A stretch of DNA of 64,000 bases, taken from sequence record NC_061449.1; one strand, 5' to 3'. Shown here piece by piece: positions 8,454 through 34,105 of the stretch (position 1 is its first letter; each line of letters begins with the position of its first letter). Position numbers and translations under genes: made by a program. The notes below the pieces were generated by a model. It saw only the letters and a program-made list of their open reading frames with translations, did no database searches and was not told the origin of the DNA.

Positions 8454-8950
8454 TGGAAACAAATTCAGTGGACGAAAGTCCTAATAACGCAAGGCATCGC
8501 ATCTTCTTTAAGCAGCCGAAACGAGTCCCTCCCTTCGATACAGCTTTCGTTCGTTCCTCAAACAAGGAAGGTCTGAAAGTTCTCCTATCGGCTGCTCCTG
8601 AACATTGTCAGATTATTTTGTTTACGGACGGTCCCGGCGCCGCTTACGCCTTGAAACGCCTCTTTAAGCGCAACTTCAAACTCTGTTCGCAAGCTCCACA
8701 ACTTGACCTTAGGACACTTACGTTCACCGGTCAGGTCGTTCTACAGTTCGTTCGCGGTGGTGCAGTCGTAGACCCACTCGCTCGTTACTTCTGCGCTGGT
8801 GATAGCTATCTGCATGAGCTTGCCCAGACGACGAAGATTGCCGAAGTCGATACAGACACGATTGATATGTTCTGTTGCGGCTTAGGGTTTCATCGTGCGT
8901 TACGTGAGCGTGGTCGAGGTCGTTCTCTCGTATTCGCGGAGGAACAATGA
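8453..8950 (+). CDS. hypothetical protein
   Basis: 165-aa coupled ORF. Confidence 0.6.
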   Translation: METNSVDESPNNARHRIFFKQPKRVPPFDTAFVRSSNKEGLKVLLSAAPEHCQIILFTDGPGAAYALKRLFKRNFKLCSQAPQLDLRTLTFTGQVVLQFVRGGAVVDPLARYFCAGDSYLHELAQTTKIAEVDTDTIDMFCCGLGFHRALRERGRGRSLVFAEEQ

Positions 8951-9978
8951 GTGGTAGATCGTTTGCCAGTATAGGGAAAACCCCTACACCCGGCTCAGTA
9001 CCAAAGATGAAGATCAAGTACGGCAAGAAGCCGATGCTTCACGTTGTTGATGCGTCGAACTGGATGTGTCGTGCTTACTTCGCTACGCAGAAAAGTCCTA
9101 CGTATGCAAAAGACGGTACGCCGACTTATGGCCTGCGCCAGTTCCTGTATATGGTTAAGGACCTGATTGATATTGCTGCGAAAGACCCGAACGGTGCGTA
9201 TCTCGCTTTTTGCTTCGACCCAAGCTCAAGCGATACGTGGCGTTATCGTGCAATTCAACAATGGGCTGCTGAACACAAGAAGAAATACATTCGTCAGGTG
9301 TTCAAGAAGTCGAGCGACTACAAGGGTAACCGCGACCGAACTCAGACAGTAGAGCTTGGTCCGCAGATGACTCTTGCGCGTGAGATCTTGCAAATGGCAG
9401 GCTACTACGTAGGGATTAAAAAGCCTTACGAGTGCGATGACCTTGTAGGTACATTGAGCGACCGCTTCAAGCATGACTATCTGATCAAGCTGTATTCGCG
9501 TGATAAAGACTATGTGCAGTTGGTCGATCACAAAAACGTTGAGCTTATCATGCAAGCGCAGTCGAACGCTCCTGAACGCCGCTTCGATTTCAAAACAGCA
9601 CAGGGTTTCTTTGGTGTTCCTGCTGATCGTGTTATTGATATGCTCGCACTCTGCGGAGACGGCGTCGATAACGTTCCAGGCATTCCTGGGCTTGGCGAGA
9701 AGACCTCGATTGAGCTTATCAATAAGTGGGGAGGCGCGTTAGGTATTCGTGACGCTCTGCTCAGTGGTAAGTTGAAATCAAATGCCGGTTGGGCGAAAGC
9801 ACTGACCATGCAAGTACCGGCTATGGATATTGAATTGCAAATGGAGCTTGTAACTATCGACCGTAACGTTCCGTGTTTGCCTCGCAACATCGAAGCGTTC
9901 GCTCCGAGCAGACCAGACATAAAAGCGCTGAAAGCTACTAAGAAGCGCCTGGCTCTGCCTCAACTATTACACGTCTAG
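8947..9978 (+). CDS. 5'-3' exonuclease / flap endonuclease (PolA N-terminal, T4 RNase H-like)
   Basis: VVDASNWMCRAYFA, YKGNR, YECDDLVGTL, SRDKDYVQL, LCGDGVDNVPGIPGLGEKT (helix-hairpin-helix). Confidence 0.92.
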   Translation: MSGRSFASIGKTPTPGSVPKMKIKYGKKPMLHVVDASNWMCRAYFATQKSPTYAKDGTPTYGLRQFLYMVKDLIDIAAKDPNGAYLAFCFDPSSSDTWRYRAIQQWAAEHKKKYIRQVFKKSSDYKGNRDRTQTVELGPQMTLAREILQMAGYYVGIKKPYECDDLVGTLSDRFKHDYLIKLYSRDKDYVQLVDHKNVELIMQAQSNAPERRFDFKTAQGFFGVPADRVIDMLALCGDGVDNVPGIPGLGEKTSIELINKWGGALGIRDALLSGKLKSNAGWAKALTMQVPAMDIELQMELVTIDRNVPCLPRNIEAFAPSRPDIKALKATKKRLALPQLLHV

Positions 9979-9989
9979 AAGAGGACAGC

Positions 9990-10532
9990 ATGACGGAAAA
10001 GATTACGCAGTTGGAGAAATGGTTTGATGCAGCGAAAGTCGCATTCAAGATGGGGACAGTCAACCCTGATGGTGATGCTGCGTTGCTGTTGGCAATCCAT
10101 AAACGTCTGGTGAAAGAAGCCGAAGATTCAGGTGACGAAGATACTGTGACCGCAGCTCGGGTAGATCTGGAGGAATTTCTTGCAGACCTGCGCAAAGAGC
10201 TTCGCATGTACGACCTGATCTGTCGTCGCTTCAACACTGACCTGTACCCGAACATCAAAGTCGGTGATGACGTCAAAATCTATATCGCACTCATGGCACA
10301 AACGCCGGGTAGTGCTGTAATGGCAATGACGTACCTGTATCTCGCTCGCTGCTACACGCTGCAAGACATGATTCTGAACTTTCTCCCGAACGGCTTCCCT
10401 GCTAACGATGCTCTTGGCCTTACGTGGAGCATTCAGAAAGGGAACAGTGATTCGTTTACCGGAAATCTGGTGGACGATATTGAAACTGTAAATAGCCTGT
10501 ACAATAAGATGTATAGCTCTGGAGATAAGTAA
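9990..10532 (+). CDS. hypothetical protein
   Basis: 180-aa ORF with GAGG RBS. Confidence 0.65.
   Translation: MTEKITQLEKWFDAAKVAFKMGTVNPDGDAALLLAIHKRLVKEAEDSGDEDTVTAARVDLEEFLADLRKELRMYDLICRRFNTDLYPNIKVGDDVKIYIALMAQTPGSAVMAMTYLYLARCYTLQDMILNFLPNGFPANDALGLTWSIQKGNSDSFTGNLVDDIETVNSLYNKMYSSGDK
10486..10494 (+). promoter_or_regulatory. CTGTAAATA motif
   Basis: Exact copy 37 nt upstream of ORF 10532. Confidence 0.55.
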
Positions 10533-11125
10533 TGGATTTGTCTGCTATCGGTTACGCCCCGAAGCAGTTTCGAGTAATTCCCGTCGAGAAGGGCAATCTC
10601 GTTACTGACTTCATTCAAGGTAAGTTTCGCGTTATCGGCGTTGAGTGCAACGCTCGCGGTGCTTACGGTAGTCCTATTCAAAAGAGTATTGCACGTCGCT
10701 TCCCGGAAGTTGTGCGCAAGGTCGAATCAATCGACTACGAACACGAACTGACAATCGGTAAGACGCACATGATCCGTGTCGGTACTCAATATCGCCGCAA
10801 TATGTTTGTTGCTAACATGCACATTGCTCGCGGTTTTGGTCTGGGTCTCAATGGATCTTCTGCTGGAGCCCACAAGCCCATCAATCGTTTCAGTGAGAAG
10901 TTCCTCACGCGGGCGTTTGAAGACTTGTTGGAGCAGTGCGATAAAGAGAATGTTGCACTTGACCGACAGATCGCTATTCAGCGTTTCTATGGCGGACTCG
11001 GCGGGGTTTCGTGGGAAGAAGTATGTGTGGTGCTCGACGCTATCTGCGAAAAGTATCAGTTCAACATGTACGCTTATCTCCCTCGTAACTACAACACTAA
11101 CTTTGTGCGGGGCGTTGCGCAATAA
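10532..11125 (+). CDS. macrodomain-like protein (Poa1p / phage type)
   Basis: KGNLVTDF…IGVECNARGAYGSPIQKSIARRFPE…YGGLGGVSWEEV, matching the macrodomain pattern GD/N-L…CN…G…IA…FP…GxGGxxW. Confidence 0.7.
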   Translation: MDLSAIGYAPKQFRVIPVEKGNLVTDFIQGKFRVIGVECNARGAYGSPIQKSIARRFPEVVRKVESIDYEHELTIGKTHMIRVGTQYRRNMFVANMHIARGFGLGLNGSSAGAHKPINRFSEKFLTRAFEDLLEQCDKENVALDRQIAIQRFYGGLGGVSWEEVCVVLDAICEKYQFNMYAYLPRNYNTNFVRGVAQ

Positions 11126-12634: not shown

Positions 12635-12685
12635 AGGCTGCGAACGGTAATTTCGAGCGTCAAAACAAATAACGGAAATCTAATC

Positions 12686-13456
12686 ATGAGCAACGTTGAT
12701 AAAACAATGCCAGAAGGTCGCTGGGAGTTCAATGAGCCAGTTGCTGCTGTGTTCGATAACATGCTGCAAAACTCAATTCCTTCCTATGATCGTATGCGCG
12801 ATCTGACCTATCGTCTCGGTCGCCAGTTCGTAACTCCTGGTTCAGCTATCGTTGACCTGGGCGCTTCACTCGGCCGTGCTATCGAACCGTTCTGTGCTGA
12901 GTTCGGCGAGTACATGTATCTTCACGCTGCTGATCGTCCTGAGCCTGATCGTGAAGTTGGCAACATGTATTGCTGCTACGAGGTCGCGCCAGCAATGCTG
13001 GAGCGTCTGCGTGAAAACCCTGTGCTGAAAACGGCTAAAGCGAAAATCAGTAGCGAGTCGCTGGTGGAAGTAGACACGTTCCGCTTCGGCGAGCAGGTAG
13101 AGTGTTCGCTCATTCTGTCTGTGCTTACTCTCCAGTTCACGCCGATTGAGCACCGTCAGCACATTTTGGAGAAAGTGTACGACTCGTTGCAGAAAGGCGG
13201 TGCGTTCATTCTCGTTGAGAAAGTGTTGGGTGACGACAACTTCCTCGACCGTCTGCTTGTTGATACTTACTACGGCATGAAGGGCGACAACGGTTATTCG
13301 CAAGAGAGCATTGCGACGAAACGCAAAGCGCTTGAAGGTGTACTCGTACCTGTCAAGGCCGCGTGGAACGAAGAACTGCTGCGCAAAGCAGGCTTCGACC
13401 GCGTTGAATGTTTCTACCGCGATCTTAACTTCGCCGGATGGATCGCAATTAAGTAA
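12686..13456 (+). CDS. cmoA: carboxy-S-adenosyl-L-methionine synthase (CmoA family)
   Basis: WEFNEPVAAVFDNMLQNSIPSY, DLGASLG, TLQF, LVEK, NGYSQESIATKRKALEGV parallel E. coli CmoA ([51 protein letters not shown]), including the Arg199 equivalent. Confidence 0.9.
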   Translation: MSNVDKTMPEGRWEFNEPVAAVFDNMLQNSIPSYDRMRDLTYRLGRQFVTPGSAIVDLGASLGRAIEPFCAEFGEYMYLHAADRPEPDREVGNMYCCYEVAPAMLERLRENPVLKTAKAKISSESLVEVDTFRFGEQVECSLILSVLTLQFTPIEHRQHILEKVYDSLQKGGAFILVEKVLGDDNFLDRLLVDTYYGMKGDNGYSQESIATKRKALEGVLVPVKAAWNEELLRKAGFDRVECFYRDLNFAGWIAIK

Positions 13457-13463
13457 GGGAAGT

Positions 13464-14729
13464 ATGATGAAAGTAAACGGGCGTATCTTAGCAATCGTGC
13501 CACACAAGACCCTCCAGGACAGGACTAAGTCTGGTGTTGGTGCGTACATTGATGGACTTGAAGCGTACGGCTTCTGCGACTTCATCACTGACGGTGAAAA
13601 CAGCTCTGTCACCAAGAGCCTGTGGTTTAACTACGGTGATACCACTCTAAGCGACGGTTACAAAGTTGGTCACATCCAGAGTGCTCTGCTTGAAGCGCTC
13701 GACCGCATTCCGTATCGTGCAATTATTTGTAGCACCTACGAAGCTGTCGAAGCTGCTGTCGGTCTTGGTCTGCCTAAGATTATGCCCGTTTACTATCGTT
13801 CACACAACAGCTTCCTGTTAACGCAGGACCTGAATGGGCTTGGTGCTGAGAAGATGCACCGTGCGTTGCTGCAAGCGCCTGTGACTGGTCTGCGCATCTT
13901 AGCGAACTGTGATTCAACTGCGCGTGTGCTGTCTGAGATTTATAAAACTGAGGCTGCTGTCGCGTATAACGCATTCAGTGTATCTGACTACAATCCACCT
14001 GCGAAACGTAAACCTTCGCTGTTGATTATCTGTCGCTACGAAAAGGTTAAGCGTCCTGCGTTTGCTGCGCGTATCGCTGCTGCGTCTGGCTTACCTGTTC
14101 GTGTTATGACCGGCTCTGATCGTCAGGTCAAAAGCTGGGAGAAAGAGCTTGCTGATGCAGGCGTAAAAGATTACCAAGTCGTCAGTGGTTTGTCTGGTGA
14201 CGAGAAGATGGCGTTCATCGGACAATGTACCGTAGCGCTGTCATGTGCCGAAGTAGAGTCATTCGCTAACGGTGTGCGTGAGACTATCCCGTACTGCCCG
14301 ACGTTCGTTGTGCAAACTTCTAAGTACGATTGGGCGCGAGACTATACGCGCTTCTGCTCTGAGAACAAGCACATCCACATTCGCACTGTTGATCGTGTGA
14401 CTGCGAAAGAGGTGGAAGAACTGGGCAATGAGATTGCTTACTGGGCCCGCACCAAGTATCTGACTAAAGCTGAACGCGTTACGCTGCTGACCGAATGGTG
14501 CAAGCGCGTGGACAAAGGCTGGGCCGACTTCATGAAGAATGCAGTCGTGCCTGATGACGGCAAGCCGATGAAGACCGACCTGTCGAAAGAACTCGAAGAA
14601 AAAGGCGTAGTAGATTGGTCGAAGACGCAGACGTTAATGCGTACTGTAAAAGCTATACACAAGTGTCATGCTCGTATGGGCTTGACGTTCGATGGCACCA
14701 AAATCAAAACGAAAGGGAGGAAGAAATGA
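13464..14729 (+). CDS. GT-B fold glycosyltransferase (GT4-like)
   Basis: N-terminal SGVGAY, LLIICRYEKVKRP (R…K donor-binding pattern), ESFANGVRE (E-x7-E motif). Confidence 0.75.
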   Translation: MMKVNGRILAIVPHKTLQDRTKSGVGAYIDGLEAYGFCDFITDGENSSVTKSLWFNYGDTTLSDGYKVGHIQSALLEALDRIPYRAIICSTYEAVEAAVGLGLPKIMPVYYRSHNSFLLTQDLNGLGAEKMHRALLQAPVTGLRILANCDSTARVLSEIYKTEAAVAYNAFSVSDYNPPAKRKPSLLIICRYEKVKRPAFAARIAAASGLPVRVMTGSDRQVKSWEKELADAGVKDYQVVSGLSGDEKMAFIGQCTVALSCAEVESFANGVRETIPYCPTFVVQTSKYDWARDYTRFCSENKHIHIRTVDRVTAKEVEELGNEIAYWARTKYLTKAERVTLLTEWCKRVDKGWADFMKNAVVPDDGKPMKTDLSKELEEKGVVDWSKTQTLMRTVKAIHKCHARMGLTFDGTKIKTKGRKK

Positions 14730-15757
14730 GCGTGATTGGTGATATCTATAATATTCCGCAACCGTACGCGATGTTCTGTGGTAACGCCACGACGAAAGCA
14801 ATGGCGAAGATCACTGCCGGTATGGTTGAGTGGGCGTCAGAGAAAGTCTGCTGTGTAGTTGACGATGCTAATAACCTGTTCCCTGAAATGCCTCACGTTG
14901 AAATTCGTGACCTCAATAAGACCGATGCAGAAACTCTGGTCATCGGGTTTGCGCCTTTTGGCGGTCAGATTAACGAAGACATTGATCGCGCTATCTGCGA
15001 AGCATTGAAGCGTGGCCTGAACGTTGCTGCTGCTCTGCACGTCAAGCTGTCTGACAATCCTAAATACTTCGCTCTAGCTCGTGAGCATGGGGTATCGCTG
15101 TATGACTTCCGCCACCACCCTGAGCAATATCCTCTGGGCACTGGTCTTCCTCGTGCCGGTGTTCGTGTTCTTACTGTTGGTACTGACTGTTCGTGCGGTA
15201 AGAAATTTACTGCACTCGCACTGACTAAGAAGCTGACCGAGCTGAAACAGAAAGCTGTGTTCTGTGCTACCGGTCAAACTGGTTTTCTGATTAGCGGTCG
15301 CGGCATCAACAACGACACTGTGGTCGCTGACTTCCTTGCTGGTGCTGCTGAGTGGCTGTCACCTGCTGACGAAGAAGCTATCTATCTGATTGAAGGTCAA
15401 GGTGCGTTACGCCATCCGGCGTACACTGGTGGCAGCATGAGTCTGATTGCTGGCTCCCAGCCCGACGCTATCGTTGTCTGCCACACTGTTGGCCGTAACT
15501 TCATGATGAACACCGAGCGCGAGATCAACATCGTTGACGAGATCTCTGCTAATCTCGCTGCTGCCGCAATGCACGACTGGTACCCGAAAGTCGTCGGTAT
15601 CAGTATCAACTTCTGCGAAGTGAAGATGACGAAGAAAGAGCGCGAAGTATATTTGCGTAATCTTTCTAAAAGCAGTGGTTACGTGGCGTTTGACCCACAA
15701 GCTGGCGGTGAAGAGTTTGACCGTGTTGCGCACTACATCACGACGCTCAAACGCTGA
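14726..15757 (+). CDS. DUF1611 family protein (DgcN-like, P-loop)
   Basis: VLTVGTDCSCGKKFTALAL, ATGQTGFLI, DFLAGAAEWL, IEGQGALRHPAY, GSQPDAIVVCH; ATGA overlap with the GT gene. Confidence 0.85.
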   Translation: MSVIGDIYNIPQPYAMFCGNATTKAMAKITAGMVEWASEKVCCVVDDANNLFPEMPHVEIRDLNKTDAETLVIGFAPFGGQINEDIDRAICEALKRGLNVAAALHVKLSDNPKYFALAREHGVSLYDFRHHPEQYPLGTGLPRAGVRVLTVGTDCSCGKKFTALALTKKLTELKQKAVFCATGQTGFLISGRGINNDTVVADFLAGAAEWLSPADEEAIYLIEGQGALRHPAYTGGSMSLIAGSQPDAIVVCHTVGRNFMMNTEREINIVDEISANLAAAAMHDWYPKVVGISINFCEVKMTKKEREVYLRNLSKSSGYVAFDPQAGGEEFDRVAHYITTLKR

Positions 15758-16701
15758 TGAAAGTCTTAATCGACAATGCCGCGTTAGCGAGTAATGCGGC
15801 CTATTTAAAATCACTCGCTCCGTCCATGATTCCGGTTGTGAAAGGTAATTTCTACGGTCATGGTTTAGATTGTGTGAGAGCATTCTCCTTAGGGTTTGAG
15901 GTGCTCGCTGTCCATAGCGACCGCGAAGCACTTGCGCTGCGTGAACTCGAACTCGACCACACGCTGTTAATTCTCGGCGGTGTATACGGTCGCATGTGGA
16001 ATACAGTGCCTGTTCTGAACGCAAAGCAAGTCGGCAAGTATGAAGGACGATACGCTGTGTTTGCTGATTGGGGCTGTCGTCGCATCAACGTCAAGCCCGA
16101 AGATCTCACGCACCCACCCGCGTTGATTCTTGTTCACTCGGATGACTATCGTGTGCCTGTGTCTGAGTACGACGCTAATGAGATCGCACAACGCTACAAC
16201 GTGCCACTGTCTATGCTGTCTGTAGGCTCAAGCATGAACGTGCTCGATCAATATTCACCGAAGTTGAAACCTCGTGTCGGTATGGCAATTACCGGATATA
16301 GTAGCGATGAAACTGTGAACGGTAATTTGTGTGTAGCGAAGACAGTGCTTGCTCGTACCTGCGATAAGCTGGATGCGGGTCGAGTATTCGGTTACGGTGC
16401 GTTGGTGCCTAACAGCGCAGACAAGTTCCTGTACTCGATTGATGTTGGTTATTACGATAACCTGTATCAGTCCAACAAGAACACACCTGTGTATTGTCCT
16501 GATGCACCACATGCACAGGTCACGCTTCTCACAGGCGTTGCCAACGCAATCAGCATGAACCATGCCTTCGTATTGTCAGATATCGAGCTACCGTTTGACT
16601 CTGAGATTGAAATACTCGGACCTAACGTTCGCGCAGACTATCTGGCTAAACTCCACGGAACAACAACTGCGAATATTTTAAGGCTGGGTAATCATGGCTA
16701 A
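15757..16701 (+). CDS. alr: PLP-dependent amino-acid racemase (alanine racemase family)
   Basis: PVVKGNFYGHG (PLP Lys), EALALR, FGYGA (catalytic Tyr), GYYDN, ISMNH. Confidence 0.85.
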   Translation: MKVLIDNAALASNAAYLKSLAPSMIPVVKGNFYGHGLDCVRAFSLGFEVLAVHSDREALALRELELDHTLLILGGVYGRMWNTVPVLNAKQVGKYEGRYAVFADWGCRRINVKPEDLTHPPALILVHSDDYRVPVSEYDANEIAQRYNVPLSMLSVGSSMNVLDQYSPKLKPRVGMAITGYSSDETVNGNLCVAKTVLARTCDKLDAGRVFGYGALVPNSADKFLYSIDVGYYDNLYQSNKNTPVYCPDAPHAQVTLLTGVANAISMNHAFVLSDIELPFDSEIEILGPNVRADYLAKLHGTTTANILRLGNHG

Positions 16702-17563
16702 ACACGTTTTGCGCAAGCTGTTTGAACAGCACGTTAAAGCAGAGGTCAAAGATGACAAGGTGGCAGTGCTGCTGTCCAGTGGTCTTGACGGACTTGTTAG
16801 CGGGCTTGCTGCCCATGACTTAGGAAAGAAGGTACACGCCTTTACTTTCCAAATGGGCGACAACGAAAGTTTCGACAGCAAACACGCACGTAAAGTCGCA
16901 GAGAAGATGGGATGGGAGTTCACGCTTGTGAAAGTCCCTACGTCTGACAGCGCTATCGTACAGGGTTGGAAAGCGCTTCACGCGAAGTACCGTTGCGTTA
17001 AGAAGCGCGACTATGAGTGCGCATATCCTATGGTGTATTGCTACAAGGCAATCAAGGATGCAGGTTACAAGTATGTACTGAGCGGCCTTGTCGCTGATGC
17101 CTACTTCTGTTTTGCGCGTAACACTCACATCGCTAAAATCAGCGGACCGCACAGCGTACTCGAAAAGTTCGACGAGTACCGCAAAGCATATTGGGCACCG
17201 TGGTTCAAGAGCGGTAAGAAGTCTCTCGGCGTTGATGGATATAACCCTAGCGGTATGCTGCAACACGAAATGCTGTGCGACTCTTTCGGTCTGACGCACG
17301 TTAACCCGTGGCTGATAAAGAAAGTCCATGACTACTTCATTGGTCGTTCATGGCAAGAACTAAATCAACCCAAGCAGAAAATGCCAATAACAGAAGCATG
17401 GGCTGATCACATCGCGGTTGTAGGCCATCGCCCGCATCGCGGTTATCAAACAGAAGCTGGAGTACCTGCGTACTTCGAACGCTTACTGGATAATCCTGAG
17501 ATCAACTTCAACGGTCGCAAGCGTGTTATGGACCTTGCCCGTGATTGGTCAACGAGGACTTAA
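16694..17563 (+). CDS. asparagine-synthetase-like ATP-dependent amide ligase (synthetase domain only)
   Basis: VAVLLSSGLDG PP-loop, HAFTF…DSKHARKVAEKMG, YVLSGLVADAYF (cf. VLSGEGADELF); no N-terminal glutaminase domain. Confidence 0.8.
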   Translation: MAKHVLRKLFEQHVKAEVKDDKVAVLLSSGLDGLVSGLAAHDLGKKVHAFTFQMGDNESFDSKHARKVAEKMGWEFTLVKVPTSDSAIVQGWKALHAKYRCVKKRDYECAYPMVYCYKAIKDAGYKYVLSGLVADAYFCFARNTHIAKISGPHSVLEKFDEYRKAYWAPWFKSGKKSLGVDGYNPSGMLQHEMLCDSFGLTHVNPWLIKKVHDYFIGRSWQELNQPKQKMPITEAWADHIAVVGHRPHRGYQTEAGVPAYFERLLDNPEINFNGRKRVMDLARDWSTRT

Positions 17564-17564
17564 C

Positions 17565-18185
17565 ATGTTAGTACACATCATTGACGGAAACGTGGGCGGT
17601 AACTATGTGTTCCACAAGCTGCAAGAGTCTGGTATCAACGCGCGTGTCCATGCGCCTAGTGACCCACGCCGCCGTGCAGTAGCAGCAACCTACCCTTCGC
17701 TGTCTATGGGATTTACTCCCGAAGAGATCGAGAAGCATATCGGTAATGTGCTTGGCACCTATCGAGGCCTGTTCTTGATTAGCAGTTATGTAGGTTCGCT
17801 GGTGGCTCGTAGCATGATTGACCAGTGTGGTCAGAGTCATAACATCATTTATTGCGATGATCTACAGTGTGGGTCTATGCCTGTTGTTGCTTCCTCAATT
17901 TCTGTAAATGTATATCAGAAGCAACGACGACTCGGACGTATTGCAGGTAGACTCAAACACTTCGACCTCGACCACGAATTTATTATCGCTGATAAATCAG
18001 TGCGATTTGCGTCAGGTTCAGAGTTTGATGAACACGGCGCGCGTGAAGAACTGGACGATACGCCTAAGTTTCTATCGAGTCCGTCAATGATTGTTGCTGC
18101 ACACAAACTCGGTGTGAAGCGCAGCATGTATCACAACTATGCAGGTCTGGTGCGAGAGTTCCTTGAAAAGCGCCAGCAGCAATAA
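17565..18185 (+). CDS. hypothetical protein, possibly degenerate Asp/Glu racemase (MurI) fold
   Basis: N-terminus HIIDGNVGGNYV resembles MurI IFDSGVGGLSV; the canonical catalytic CNT is not present (ISSYVGS instead). Confidence 0.55.
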   Translation: MLVHIIDGNVGGNYVFHKLQESGINARVHAPSDPRRRAVAATYPSLSMGFTPEEIEKHIGNVLGTYRGLFLISSYVGSLVARSMIDQCGQSHNIIYCDDLQCGSMPVVASSISVNVYQKQRRLGRIAGRLKHFDLDHEFIIADKSVRFASGSEFDEHGAREELDDTPKFLSSPSMIVAAHKLGVKRSMYHNYAGLVREFLEKRQQQ

Positions 18186-18468: not shown

Positions 18469-18924
18469 ATGAACCTGTTTTCTATTTTAAAGCAGCAAGT
18501 GAAGAAAGCGCTATCAACCGAAGCGAACCACGAGCCTGAGATTCGCTCTCTGTTCGACTGGCGTTACTCTGTGGAAATCAAAGGCCAGATGTATATCGTC
18601 GGTAAGACTGGCGCTAACACCTGCTTCTATATCGAGCCAGGTACTTCTGAGCCTATCGCTTGTTACCCTGATGCGTTACTCGAAAAGATCGACGAGTGGG
18701 GAGCGAGCAAGTACGTGTCGTATTCGATCTTCTTCAAACGCTTCGATAGCCCTGTTGCTGAGAACATCAAAACTCTCGAAAAGGCAATGAGCGGCAAACC
18801 GAAGACCTTTAAGAAAGGCTACTTCATCTGTGGTGTGACACCGAAAGGCAAGCGTGAGAAACTCTATCGCTTGCAGCAAGGTCTGTCAGGTATGCAGTGG
18901 GTAGCTGTGGAGAAACAAGCATGA
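18469..18924 (+). CDS. hypothetical protein
   Basis: ATG after GAGGG RBS. Confidence 0.6.
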   Translation: MNLFSILKQQVKKALSTEANHEPEIRSLFDWRYSVEIKGQMYIVGKTGANTCFYIEPGTSEPIACYPDALLEKIDEWGASKYVSYSIFFKRFDSPVAENIKTLEKAMSGKPKTFKKGYFICGVTPKGKREKLYRLQQGLSGMQWVAVEKQA

Positions 18925-20984: not shown

Positions 20985-21827
20985 ATGACCGTAATCAGTC
21001 CAATCCGTTATCAGGGCAATAAGCGAAGCCTTATCCCTCTTATTCTTGAGCACACACCAAGCGTACAAGACTGTCCGCGTATGGTCGATGTGTTTGGTGG
21101 TAGTGCCACTGTGTGCGCTAACATGCCTCAGAAGTTTCGTGTGTACAACGAGCTTAGTCCTCAGGTGTTTGAGATCGTTAAGATGCTGGTTGAGCAAGAC
21201 CCGAAGAAAACTCTCGGTCAAGTCAAGCGTCTGGTAAAACACTGGTGCCTGACAAACAGCAACGAAGCGAACTATGATGCGTTTCGAACTGTCGTCCAGA
21301 AGAAGCGTACACCGATATTGCATTACGTTGCACACAGACATGCGCACTCGAATATGCTGCGCTTCAACCAGCAGGGTGTGTACAACGTAGGCTTTGGTGA
21401 TCGTGGTCTGATTGGAAAGTTCGACGAGCTGGAGCACGAACTCACTACTTTCCACAGTCACATGCAGGGTGTCCACCTGACGAACATGAAGTACGGTAAG
21501 TTACTGAGTCGCTTAGGCCACCAACTGAACTACAACACGTTCTGTTACTTCGACCCGCCGTATCTGGCGAGCGGTGCAATGCAGTACGGCAAGTGGACTG
21601 AAACGAATGAGCGTAACCTGCTTGCTACTCTGGAGCAACTCAATCGCTTAGGCGTACCGTGGATGTTGAGCAACGTAACCGAACACCGACACTTCTCAAA
21701 CGATTTGTTGAAGCGCTGGTTAAAGAAACACGCAACGACCGTGTTGTACCCGAACAAAAGCTATGCGATGAACAATGGCCAGAGTGGCTCGCATGGTACT
21801 GTTGAAATTCTGGCAATGAACTACTGA
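20985..21827 (+). CDS. dam: DNA adenine methyltransferase (Dam / D12 class)
   Basis: SPIRYQGNKRSL, DVFGGSATV, YFDPPY; GATC specificity not established. Confidence 0.88.
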   Translation: MTVISPIRYQGNKRSLIPLILEHTPSVQDCPRMVDVFGGSATVCANMPQKFRVYNELSPQVFEIVKMLVEQDPKKTLGQVKRLVKHWCLTNSNEANYDAFRTVVQKKRTPILHYVAHRHAHSNMLRFNQQGVYNVGFGDRGLIGKFDELEHELTTFHSHMQGVHLTNMKYGKLLSRLGHQLNYNTFCYFDPPYLASGAMQYGKWTETNERNLLATLEQLNRLGVPWMLSNVTEHRHFSNDLLKRWLKKHATTVLYPNKSYAMNNGQSGSHGTVEILAMNY

Positions 21828-31263: not shown

Positions 31264-31974
31264 ATGGCAAAAACTGCTATCAAAGCAAAGGAAGGGAAAA
31301 AGAAAAAGAACGACGGACTAAAGTTTGAGTTGAAGAAACTCAACTCCGTCGCCCAGTTGAAAGGTGCAGCGTACAACCCACGCTTCATTACAGACAGTCG
31401 CCTGAAAGCGCTCGAAGGTTCTTTGGGTAGTTTCGGTGACCTGTCTGGTATCGTGTTCAACAACAACGTCAAATCGGGCGTGTTGATCTCTGGCCACCAG
31501 CGCCTGAAATCAATCGAGGGCTGGAAGACTCGCATCGAGGTCCAGAAGTCTGTTGATAAGCACGGTACAATCGGTCTGGGCTACATTCACGCAACGCATC
31601 CAAAGAAAGCTGATAAGGTGATCAGCATTCCTCTGCGTATCGTGAACTGGACCGATAAGAAAGCTGAGTATGCTGCAAACATCGCGGCGAACGCTCACGG
31701 CGGTGAGTTCGATAACAAGAAACTCGCCAAGCTGGTTGAACAGCTCGACCTCAACACAATCAAGCCTCAGTTACTTGGTCTTGACCCGTTAGAGATTCGC
31801 GGCCTGCAACAAAAGCTGAAAGTACAGGCTGTTGTGCAGGACGAAAAACGCGCTGGCAAGACTACCGGCCAGATGAACGGTAGTACCGGTAAGTTCAATG
31901 AGTACAACGCCGATGATGTTGGCGATACTCTGAACTGCACCTGCCCGCGCTGTGGATTTAAGTTCGAGGGATAA
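31264..31974 (+). CDS. ParB/sulfiredoxin-like N-terminal domain protein with C-terminal CPxCG zinc knuckle
   Basis: LKGAAYNPRFI…SLGSFG…LISGHQRLKSI; ends CTCPRCGFKFEG; directly upstream of the C5-MTase. Confidence 0.8.
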   Translation: MAKTAIKAKEGKKKKNDGLKFELKKLNSVAQLKGAAYNPRFITDSRLKALEGSLGSFGDLSGIVFNNNVKSGVLISGHQRLKSIEGWKTRIEVQKSVDKHGTIGLGYIHATHPKKADKVISIPLRIVNWTDKKAEYAANIAANAHGGEFDNKKLAKLVEQLDLNTIKPQLLGLDPLEIRGLQQKLKVQAVVQDEKRAGKTTGQMNGSTGKFNEYNADDVGDTLNCTCPRCGFKFEG

Positions 31975-31975
31975 T

Positions 31976-34105
31976 ATGATCATCAAGCCGCCTACGATGA
32001 AGGAAATCAACAAGCTGGATAAACCCTGGCGTGGTATGAGTTTCTTCGCAGGTTGCGGTGGTTCTTCTACCGGCCACAAGATGGCCGGTATCAACATCTT
32101 GCTGAGTAACGAGTTTGTTGACCCAGCAAGAGAGTCATATGAAGCGAACCACCCGACAACTAAAGTGCTGCCTCATGACATTCGCCGCCTCGATCCCGGT
32201 AAGCTGTTACGTTACTGCGGTCTCGATAAAGGCGAACTTGATTTACTTGACGGTAGTCCTCCATGCTTCACCGAAGACACTATCATTCATACAGCAGACG
32301 GCATGAAGTTCATCTCGGACATGAACGTCGGCGACAGAGCGATGACCAGTGTCGGGCAGTATTACCCCGTATACGACACAATGGTCAGACCGTATGTCGG
32401 TACGATGCACAAAGTTGAAACGCTGATCAGCAGTAACAAGGCGACGCCAGAGCATCCGTTCTTCGTTAGACGTGCTCTGGCCGAAGGTGGTTACTCTGAC
32501 CCGTTCTGGTGTGATGCGAAAGACGTGCAGGAAGGCGACTTGCTTGGCACTCCTCGAGTTACTCCAGACCAACAGCCGGGTGTGTATTACGATCAGATTG
32601 CGCAACTGCCTAAGACGATTCAGCAGTGGGTGAGCATTCCTGAGTTCTGGTGGATGGTGGGGCACTGGTGCGATCGGGGTTCAATCGAAACCGTTAGCGG
32701 CATTGAAGTCGTTAGCTTCGAATCGCATACCAGTCTTGAGAACGCGATGATTGAGCAGGCGTTTGACGCGCTCAAACTCAGTAGCCTGAATCGTATCGAC
32801 ACGATGACTGCGCAACGTAAAACGTTCCGTACTGTTATCGATGCAGAGCTGGTACAGTTCTTGCGTCGTTTCGTAAGTCAGGGCAACAACACGTTCTCCC
32901 GTCGTCTTCCTGCAATGATGTTCCACATGAGCGCCGAGCTGAAACAACAATTCATTCTCGGTTGTGCTGGGCATGACTATGTGACTGCTATGGGCACGGG
33001 TCTAGCGATCACATCAAGCAGCAAACGCTTCCTGCTTGAGCTTAACTACCTGTGCTGTTCTGCTTTCAATCGCCCTCTGTTTAACGGTATGATTTGGGGT
33101 GATGTTTACTTCGGTAGCACCATGACACCCCGCGAGCGTAACAGTTCGCGTGAGCATATAGGCTACCTGTTCCTGCAGGACGAGCACAACTTCTTCCACG
33201 AGTTCAGTGATAGCGATTCGCATCTCTGGACCGAAGTGATTGAGAACCTTGCGTATCAAGCAACGTGCGACGTGTACAATTTCTCTGTTGAAACAGACGA
33301 AACGTATGTGGCTAACGGTGTTGTAGTCCACAACTGCAAAGGCTTCTCGACTGCTGGTGTAAAAGAAGAAGGCTGGGGCAAAGAGGTTAAGTACAGCGAC
33401 AATAAATATCAGCAGGTGGATGACCTGTTCGATCAGTATTGTCGTATGCTGCAAGGCATGATGCCTAAGGTGTTCACGGCAGAAAACGTTAGTGGTCTTG
33501 TGAAGGGGATCTCGAAAGGGTATTTCCTTGAGATCATGAAGACGTTCGACAAGCTCGGTTATTATGTACGAGCGCCAATGCTGAATGCCTGTTGGCTAGG
33601 TGTACCTCAGTCGCGTGAGCGTATCATCTTCATGGGTGTGCGTAAAGACATAGCCCATGCGCTTGGCTATAAGTCGGCTCGCGAGGCTGTGCCTGATGTT
33701 ATCCCGTGCGATACGCAAGCCTTCCTGGGTGATGCGTTGCCTCACATCTTACGATACAAGACGACGCAGAAAGACCTGATCAAGTATCTGCCTGCAATTA
33801 ACGGACCGATGCCTACGATTACAGCGTCTGATGCAATCGCGTATGAAACCGCGCGTTTCTCGTCTGCTGGGTTTATCGAAGATAACAAAGGCCATCGCCG
33901 TAAACTGACCATCGACGAACTGCTGGTAGTATCTGGAATGCCGTCTGACTATAAGCTGGTTGGCAAATTCGAAGAACAGTGGGAACGTCTTGGTCGTGTC
34001 TGTGTGCCAGCAATGACACACGCAGCATCGAAGGCTTTCATCGAACATATTCTTTTGCCTTACGCGAAGAAGAAAAAGAAAAAGCCCGGCGATATATTTA
34101 AATAA
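31976..34105 (+). CDS. C5-cytosine DNA methyltransferase family, intein-split; candidate carboxymethyltransferase
   Basis: Motif I FFAGCGG, IV GSPP-C (split by intein), VI AENV, VIII QSRERI, IX RKLTIDEL, motif X ERLGRVCVP (Arg where GN[AS]V has Asn); ATG at 31976 after GAGGG. Confidence 0.9.
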   Translation: MIIKPPTMKEINKLDKPWRGMSFFAGCGGSSTGHKMAGINILLSNEFVDPARESYEANHPTTKVLPHDIRRLDPGKLLRYCGLDKGELDLLDGSPPCFTEDTIIHTADGMKFISDMNVGDRAMTSVGQYYPVYDTMVRPYVGTMHKVETLISSNKATPEHPFFVRRALAEGGYSDPFWCDAKDVQEGDLLGTPRVTPDQQPGVYYDQIAQLPKTIQQWVSIPEFWWMVGHWCDRGSIETVSGIEVVSFESHTSLENAMIEQAFDALKLSSLNRIDTMTAQRKTFRTVIDAELVQFLRRFVSQGNNTFSRRLPAMMFHMSAELKQQFILGCAGHDYVTAMGTGLAITSSSKRFLLELNYLCCSAFNRPLFNGMIWGDVYFGSTMTPRERNSSREHIGYLFLQDEHNFFHEFSDSDSHLWTEVIENLAYQATCDVYNFSVETDETYVANGVVVHNCKGFSTAGVKEEGWGKEVKYSDNKYQQVDDLFDQYCRMLQGMMPKVFTAENVSGLVKGISKGYFLEIMKTFDKLGYYVRAPMLNACWLGVPQSRERIIFMGVRKDIAHALGYKSAREAVPDVIPCDTQAFLGDALPHILRYKTTQKDLIKYLPAINGPMPTITASDAIAYETARFSSAGFIEDNKGHRRKLTIDELLVVSGMPSDYKLVGKFEEQWERLGRVCVPAMTHAASKAFIEHILLPYAKKKKKKPGDIFK
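32264..33334 (+). mobile_element. intein (357 aa) with degenerate LAGLIDADG-like region, inserted at the catalytic Cys
   Basis: Starts CFTEDT, block B ATPEHPFFV, block F/G VYNFSVETDETYVANGVVVHN, +1 residue Cys (the catalytic PC Cys). Confidence 0.92.

Follow-up and report, generated by a model that had tools for sequence, protein, structure and literature searches.

A DUF1611 protein and a compact racemase-like protein as candidate accessory enzymes of a 5-carboxymethylcytosine DNA-hypermodification cassette in Erwinia phage pEa_SNUABM_17

Erwinia phage pEa_SNUABM_17 is a jumbo phage of the genus Alexandravirus with a genome of 263,916 bp (MZ443777). The stretch of DNA analysed here, referred to as the window, comprises bases 1-64000 of this genome, and the subject of this report is a pair of genes within it. 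The interval 14726-16701 contains exactly two coding sequences, pEaSNUABM17_00019 (14726..15757) and pEaSNUABM17_00020 (15757..16701), which are unnamed in MZ443777, where the genes of the region all carry the label 'hypothetical protein'. The first encodes a DUF1611/DgcN-like two-domain P-loop protein of 343 residues and the second a compact pyridoxal 5'-phosphate (PLP) enzyme of 314 residues with the alanine-racemase fold. A preliminary description of the window had placed a DUF1611 gene and a compact PLP racemase here and had taken the DNA to come from a phage, all of which is borne out. The pair belongs to a series of genes whose stop and start codons overlap, located between homologues of CmoA and CmoY. 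On the plus strand throughout, the region comprises a CmoA-like carboxy-S-adenosyl-L-methionine (carboxy-SAM) synthase (256 residues; 12686..13456), a GT-B/GT4-like glycosyltransferase-like (GT-like) protein that is an optional member of the cassette (420 residues; 13467..14729), the DUF1611 protein, the racemase, and a CmoY-like AMP-forming amide ligase consisting of the asparagine-synthetase C-domain/PP-loop only (289 residues; 16694..17563). The stop codon of the GT-like gene overlaps the start of the DUF1611 gene as ATGA, the DUF1611 stop and the racemase start have one base in common, and the end of the racemase gene overlaps the start of the CmoY-like gene by 8 nt. The CmoY-like gene lies 3.2 kb from CmoA, and the gene for a CmoX-like DNA cytosine-C5 carboxymethyltransferase (717 residues; 31952..34105, plus strand), which is split by an intein (~32264-33334), is 15 kb distant. 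It is this cassette, overlooked by the preliminary description, which offers an explanation for the DUF1611-racemase pair.

The prototype of such cassettes is found in Synechococcus phage S-B43, where CmoA makes carboxy-SAM, CmoX forms 5-carboxymethylcytosine (5cxmC) in DNA and CmoY ligates glycine with ATP (PMC12783734). The system was published in December 2025 with the glycine amide as its single downstream product (Yang et al., Nat Commun 2025, PMC12783734). The CmoA-like protein of the window matches TIGR00740 with E 2.2e-42 and 145 bits, which is under the NCBI cut-off but above the score of the experimentally proven SpCmoA (116 bits), to which it is 30% identical; its homologue in phage Y3, 82% identical, is annotated as a Cx-SAM synthase. 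PF00733 is present in the CmoY-like protein (E 8e-15), which shares 34% identity with SpCmoY across 276 aligned positions (E 2e-53), and the CmoY-like proteins of all DUF1611-linked cassettes are 58-84% identical to one another. The best PDB match of the CmoX-like protein is SpCmoX itself (8YF3; E 1.9e-52), with HaeIII methylase at 1e-14. An SPPC motif and an arginine at position 350 are the features defining CmoX (PMC12783734), and in the window protein SPPC occurs at residue 102 whilst 'ERLGR' at residue 681 puts an arginine at the position of SpCmoX R350. Pfam also matches Intein_splicing and Hint in this gene, and its PF00145 matches break off at 32266 to resume at 33335. The intein, of ~357 residues, lies between SPP and the catalytic cysteine, beginning with CFTED and ending with VVHN, after which the sequence continues CKGFSTAG; the predicted spliced junction would match the uninterrupted SPPCKGFSTAG of a homologue on another phage contig (L026). 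By every sequence-level criterion tested, the cassette belongs with the CmoA/CmoX/CmoY systems. The grouping is also supported by an earlier comparative study, which noted that a CmoA-like methyltransferase, an asparagine synthase and a DNA-cytosine methyltransferase occur together in phages AD1 and Y3 and are together missing in JA11.

The protein encoded at 14726..15757 carries both DUF1611 domains (PF07755, DUF1611_C, E 4.8e-49; PF17396, DUF1611_N, E 1.9e-18), giving the architecture of a Rossmann-like N domain and a P-loop C domain. PDB entry 7XRJ aligns to it over residues 10-328, near full length, with E 4.9e-58, and its score against the NCBIfam DgcN model (NF041892) is 298 bits, under the 480-bit equivalog cut-off. 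In secondary accounts, bacterial DgcN is reportedly an N-acetyltransferase of a D-glutamate pathway in which DgcA is an enolase-superfamily N-acetyl-D-glutamate racemase, and the pathway is said to be catabolic. The phage DUF1611 proteins keep 51 positions that are near-invariant in bacteria, including the P-loop, TGQTG, EGQG and C252-H253; no variation is seen in the Walker-A-like motif GTDCSCGKK or in other features of the P-loop. About 25 bacterial near-invariant positions have changed, among them R37, Q44, R46, W86 and W219, which are invariant in 65-69 of the 69 bacterial sequences compared, and the phage clade has gained invariant residues of its own (P77, F128, Y135, N195, N196 and T198). 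Since bacterial-invariant residues have been replaced and new ones gained, the substrate, and possibly the reaction, of the phage protein may differ from those of DgcN. One form that such a difference could take is an ATP-dependent P-loop ligase, building a D-amino-acid dipeptide or extending an amino acid, whose product CmoY would attach via its free N-terminus. The invariant P-loop and the replaced DgcN residues would be compatible with this, as would a product left with a free alpha-amine and a terminal carboxylate which, like glycine, could enter a CmoY-type pocket. We nevertheless consider a ligase reaction quite improbable, as the one relative that has been characterised bears the name of an N-acetyltransferase and the alignment to 7XRJ is strong, with most of the catalytic core retained.

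Family models recognise the 314-residue protein encoded at 15757..16701 in part. PF01168 scores above threshold over residues 5-78 only, PF00842 remains under threshold, and the score against TIGR00492 (alr) is 37 bits compared with a cut-off of 168 bits. A profile made from the window protein and its five closest relatives found 2,958 proteins at E<=1e-3; among the matches listed, those past the few close relatives were proteins of 300-400 residues aligned across nearly the whole profile. An AlphaFold2 model (predicted local distance difference test, pLDDT, 93.5; predicted template-modelling score, pTM, 0.91) has the fold-type-III PLP barrel and the C-terminal beta domain, and the top 50 matches to this model in a Foldseek search of the PDB were all alanine racemases, with template-modelling scores of 0.69-0.82. 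The protein is ~50 residues shorter than alanine racemases; all strands are predicted in the model, and the small size is due to shortened, trimmed barrel helices. The motifs KGNFYGHG, GYYDN and SMNH, to which the preliminary description had drawn attention, are present at residues 29-36, 231-235 and 266-269, with GYYDN standing in place of the GYADG of ordinary racemases.

Twelve cassette-linked members of the compact family, spanning 30-50% identity, were aligned with 50 ordinary alanine racemases. The racemase-specific features of the alanine-racemase fold are Tyr265', the second catalytic base, and Arg219, which binds the pyridine nitrogen of PLP. Their equivalents, Y213 and R173, are kept in all 12 members together with the PLP lysine K29 (Lys39), R109 (Arg136), H127 (His166) and Y33 (Tyr43), and M267 is kept in 11. 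Tyr354 forms an inner gate with Tyr265' in alanine racemase and restricts the size of the side chain; this residue, a tyrosine in 42 of the 50 ordinary racemases, has become alanine in 11 of the 12 members (Ala305 in the window). The serine racemase VanT has asparagine at this position. Asp313 is replaced by asparagine in 10 members (Asn268 in the window), and Lys129, which is carbamylated in ordinary racemases, by phenylalanine or tyrosine (Phe102). The window protein lacks the alanine-specific pocket and gate formed by Tyr354, Asp313 and carbamylated Lys129, in keeping with the earlier suggestion of a non-alanine substrate. Because the catalytic residues are kept and those of the gate are changed, the compact protein resembles a functional two-base racemase whose pocket has been opened.

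An opposing view would be that the racemase-like protein is dead, or catalyses another PLP-dependent reaction (decarboxylation or aldol cleavage, for example), and is dispensable baggage. Its absence from close relatives of the phage and its score far under the alanine-racemase equivalog cut-off would fit such a view, as would a distant relative, P0013, which has lost the PLP lysine and has neither DUF1611 nor CmoY beside it. Yet the equivalents of Lys39, Tyr265', Arg219, Arg136 and His166 are present in 12 of 12 cassette-linked members, and gene order and overlap have been kept in eight lineages, which makes a dead enzyme or a different reaction very improbable. P0013 itself (L028:6001-6942) is encoded between a CmoA-like gene and the gene for a small basic protein, p150, discussed below, and its locus looks like a decayed cassette remnant. 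Close relatives of the racemase are few and form about nine clusters at 50% identity. The family has been seen only in phage or metagenomic contigs and was not found in a scan of 185,579 prokaryote genomes.

The order DUF1611, racemase, CmoY-like is found in eight divergent phage lineages whose racemases belong to separate 50%-identity clusters, usually with overlapping stop and start codons. These eight represent all the racemase clusters in which the catalytic lysine is present and the sequence context is sufficient, and their phage backbones differ. CmoA is near the three-gene unit wherever the contig allows, and in four lineages (L006, L020, L021 and L026) a CmoX with SPPC and ERxGR directly adjoins it, contiguous with the CmoY-like gene and CmoA. 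Chance juxtaposition of two metabolic morons is ruled out by the order and overlaps kept in the eight lineages. A custom hidden Markov model (HMM) scan was applied to 111 loci, 78 of them of bacterial type, and separated the DUF1611 family cleanly; the metagenome scan gave mostly bacterial DgcN loci, and these served as a control set. In 12 of 12 lineages of the phage clade, a CmoY-like gene comes after DUF1611, with the racemase in between in eight, and neither Cmo genes nor the compact racemase were detected by the custom HMM scan at any of the 78 bacterial-type loci. In scans of IMG/VR, only Alexandravirus-type genomes and one other contig (L031) were found. An enolase-superfamily gene (MR_MLE) stands immediately downstream in eight of nine sampled bacterial DUF1611 loci, in agreement with the preliminary description, whilst in phage loci the DgcA partner does not adjoin DUF1611, the next gene being racemase-like or CmoY-like.

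Within the genus, the racemase is nonetheless missing from the whole genome in 22 of 34 DUF1611-carrying phage records, including AD1, Alexandra, SNUABM_28 and SNUABM_46. It was therefore rejected as the constant partner of DUF1611, the ligase being there in every case. The notion of a swapped partner, under which the pair had originally been described, holds in that a PLP racemase stands where bacteria have an enolase-family gene, but the constant partner in phages is the CmoY-like ligase; likewise, conservation of the pairing in related phages fails inside the genus and holds across eight distant lineages. In a maximum-likelihood tree all phage DUF1611 proteins form one clade apart from the bacterial sequences, with support of 100/99. 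The tree needs three changes of racemase association, most simply read as a single gain once the basal L031 lineage had branched off, with two or more losses. When SNUABM_17 is compared with AD1, the neighbouring proteins are 83-97% identical (CmoA 97, CmoY 83, p206 89 and p150 94%) and DUF1611, encoded at L002:5001-6056 in AD1, only 58.5%, so that the DUF1611 allele changes together with the presence of the racemase. This mosaicism suggests either allele replacement or fast divergence tied to racemase presence or absence. The cultured phages differ in content: SNUABM_17 has both the GT-like gene and the racemase, SNUABM_46 the GT-like gene only, and AD1 and Alexandra neither.

The same distribution bears on whether the pair has anything to do with DNA at all. 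Free amino acids are the substrates of both families, and bacterial DgcN reportedly serves a catabolic pathway; the pair might accordingly alter the host's pools of D-amino acids or peptidoglycan precursors or, like bacterial DgcN-DgcA, salvage D-amino acids, its adjacency to Cmo genes being incidental. Such a role is made highly unlikely by the insertion of the pair between Cmo genes, with overlapping frames, in every lineage found, by the failure of phage-clade DUF1611 to occur in any of the 12 lineages without a CmoY-like gene downstream, by the restriction of the racemase family to this setting, and by the absence from phage loci of the DgcA partner for the catabolic route. Among the uses proposed in the preliminary description, the Cmo context agrees with the supply of a D-amino acid for modifying DNA; virion modification and changes to cell-wall precursors are without support from the gene context.

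Taken together, the evidence moderately favours the interpretation that the DUF1611 protein and the racemase are accessory enzymes of 5cxmC DNA hypermodification, making a D-configured amine donor for ligation. It is a more tentative suggestion that these phages carry a previously unknown hypermodified cytosine, consisting of 5-carboxymethylcytosine with an amide link to a purpose-made D-amino-acid derivative, maybe N-acylated and, in some lineages, glycosylated. By analogy with the S-B43 homologues, CmoA would make carboxy-SAM, the intein-containing CmoX would move its carboxymethyl group onto C5 of cytosines in phage DNA, and the CmoY-like ligase would adenylate the 5cxmC carboxylate and couple an amine. 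In the DUF1611 cassettes we infer this amine to be a D-configured amino-acid derivative instead of glycine. The compact PLP racemase would turn a free L-amino acid into its D-form, the substrate probably being larger than alanine because the inner gate has been opened (Tyr354 to Ala), and the DgcN-like protein, by analogy with DgcN, would N-acylate the D-amino acid, making racemisation irreversible. A reversible racemase coupled to a D-specific N-acyltransferase would thus drive the conversion of an L-amino acid to its N-acyl-D form. Since a PLP racemase needs a free alpha-amine, it would have to act before any N-acylation. The ligase in turn needs a free amine on the N-acylated product, which calls for a second amine and leads to the proposal of a D-diamino acid. 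Thus the simplest scheme accommodating all three family chemistries would be an N-alpha-acyl-D-diamino acid joined via its side-chain amine, although this is tentative and the weakest step. Where present, the basic GT-B-like protein would decorate the DNA-borne group. The racemase itself would be a supply step, which a phage could do without when the pool of its host, or a diverged allele of DUF1611, makes it superfluous.

The proteins of the cassette fall into two groups by charge. Median isoelectric points (pI) are basic for CmoX (9.5), CmoY (9.3), the GT-like protein (9.0) and p150 (9.5), and acidic for CmoA (5.2), phage DUF1611 (5.8) and the racemase (6.4), with bacterial DgcN at 5.6. Given the acidity of the two proteins and the free amino acids on which their families act, we favour a small-molecule role of the pair over action on DNA. 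The competing scheme would place the pair on the DNA itself, with the ligase attaching an L-diamino acid to 5cxmC via its side chain, the racemase epimerising the free alpha-centre and DUF1611 capping the D-alpha-amine. Replacement of Tyr354 by alanine in 11 of 12 members, together with the trimmed outer helices, could admit a tethered substrate, and the form of DUF1611 goes with the presence of the racemase. Thymidine hypermodification, moreover, includes PLP enzymes whose substrates are amino acids tethered to DNA. We regard this scheme as unlikely, given that the racemase and phage DUF1611 are acidic where the presumed DNA-facing proteins of the cassette are strongly basic, and that the active site of alanine racemase is buried at the dimer interface.

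Several points weigh against the proposal that the pair makes a D-configured amine donor. The known reaction of DgcN uses up the alpha-amine, the very group that the ligase would need, so that the scheme holds only if the molecule has another amine or if DUF1611 catalyses another reaction. With R37, Q44, R46, W86 and W219 replaced, the phage protein may have departed from DgcN in substrate specificity and even in the donor that it uses. The acetyl-CoA chemistry of DgcN is itself taken from an NCBIfam name and a secondary citation. Comparison of CmoY from phages that have the racemase with CmoY from those that lack it gives 82-84% identity, so that both may attach the same amine, which could be an L-amino acid or a D-amino acid of the host. 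The pI argument is only a proxy, and the identity and chirality of the amine, like the sequence of the steps, are putative.

Other genes accompany the cassette. The GT-like protein of the window has no Pfam match, but in the ESM Atlas its ten best family-bearing matches are all Glycos_transf_1 (score 0.98), and its L021 homologue has a weak match to PF00534. Its gene occurs in 6 of the 12 phage lineages, and the protein probably adds a further decoration. The gene for p206 (17565..18185, plus strand) lies 3' of the ligase in Alexandravirus and Sasquatchvirus and is syntenic in AD1, Alexandra, SNUABM_28 and Y3; it matches nothing in any family library scanned, and its membership in the pathway is uncertain. 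The basic protein p150 (18469..18924, plus strand) accompanies CmoA cassettes in many unrelated phages. With a custom HMM it was found beside the cassette in most lineages, including L006, L020, L021, L023, L026, L028, L031 and Y3. It has no family match, no PDB chain shares the fold of its AlphaFold2 model (pLDDT 89) at E<=0.001, and the ESM Atlas was uninformative; p150 may be an unrecognised component or a reader of the modification. ParBc proteins often accompany CmoX (PMC12783734). The protein encoded upstream of CmoX in the window (31264..31974, plus strand) has no Pfam match, but 81 of its 100 ESM Atlas neighbours are in ParB_N-containing clusters (score 0.95), and its designation as ParB_N-like is a lead only. 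PADLOC gave no match for any cassette protein.

Further observations were made at and around the cassette site. In the metagenomic phage contig L023 (and also in L024) a shortened 3-deoxy-D-arabino-heptulosonate 7-phosphate (DAHP) synthase is encoded directly 3' of the CmoY-like gene (L023:7841-8704; TIGR00034, 180 bits, above cut-off). A shikimate-pathway boost supplying prephenate for CmoA is plausible, and the gene indicates that precursor-supply functions do get recruited to such cassettes. A few kb downstream of the window cassette, at 20985-21827, lies a gene for a D12-class (Dam-like) N6-adenine DNA methyltransferase (PF02086, E 1.9e-23); as this enzyme is also encoded, the phage probably bears at least two kinds of DNA modification. 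Upstream are genes for a 5'-3' exonuclease (8947-9978) and a 197-residue protein (10532-11125), and a similar arrangement precedes the cassette in the metagenomic contigs L023 and L028. A match to phrog_335 ('phosphatase') was obtained for the 197-residue protein; at the corresponding position, AD1 and Y3 have genes annotated as O-acetyl-ADP-ribose deacetylase. At the same genomic position, Y3 (L030, record 12641-15232) and Sasquatchvirus-type records have CmoA, a different asparagine-synthetase-like ligase and an 'oxygenase', without DUF1611. The Y3-type ligase is ~24-34% identical over part of its length. The cassette site is a hotspot exchanging alternative hypermodification cassettes.

As far as the accessible literature shows, the conserved DUF1611-racemase-ligase unit has not been described before. 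Neither DUF1611 nor a racemase is mentioned in the 5cxmC report (PMC12783734) or in its supplements as far as these are accessible, and no other paper linking either to the 5cxmC system was found in the accessible literature. The authors of that report consider that other ligase clusters probably use amines not yet identified (PMC12783734), and the present cassette type provides a concrete lead to a product of this predicted sort. The unit of DUF1611, PLP racemase and CmoY-like ligase, with or without the GT-like gene, is available in cultured Erwinia and Dickeya jumbo phages of naturally differing gene content. An extended DNA chemistry in phages bears on restriction evasion, sequencing artefacts and enzymatic tools for DNA labelling. 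We know of no report of a D-amino acid in a natural DNA modification, nor of a role for DUF1611 outside D-glutamate catabolism, and each would be the first should the proposal prove true. DUF1611 and the minimal alanine-racemase scaffold would then both gain new functions.

A number of parallels and differences can be drawn between the window cassette and known systems. With the CmoA-CmoX-CmoY system of S-B43 it shares homologues of all three enzymes and a ParB_N-like neighbour. S-B43 has three genes only and attaches glycine, whereas cassettes of the window type add DUF1611 (always), the racemase (8/12), the GT-B-like protein (6/12) and p150; furthermore, the CmoY subfamily of the window type has an insertion of ~13 residues and a conserved GHRPHRGYQTEA segment, both of which SpCmoY lacks, and the window CmoX departs from the S-B43 arrangement in being 15 kb away and containing an intein. 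The bacterial DgcN-DgcA pair is similar in its two-domain DUF1611 protein, in the 51 near-invariant positions and in having a racemase gene immediately downstream in the same orientation. Its DgcA, by contrast, is of the enolase type and acts after N-acylation, whilst the phage racemase is a fold-type-III PLP enzyme and must act before; moreover, DgcN-DgcA belongs to amino-acid catabolism and the phage context points to DNA modification. With Alr/DadX, VanT and the lysine and broad-spectrum racemases, the window racemase shares the fold and the catalytic and PLP residues, but it differs in gate, GYYDN motif and length. In phages ViI, M6, SP10 and PhiW-14, amino acids are appended to 5-hydroxymethyldeoxyuridine and then tailored by PLP and other enzymes. 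The logic shared with this thymidine hypermodification is that of a handle at pyrimidine C5, an appended amino acid, subsequent tailoring and a PLP enzyme encoded in the cluster. The chemistries are different, since the thymidine systems use a phosphorylated hydroxymethyl group on uracil and a PLP decarboxylase, whereas the window encodes enzymes for a cytosine carboxylate, an AMP-forming amide ligase and a PLP racemase.

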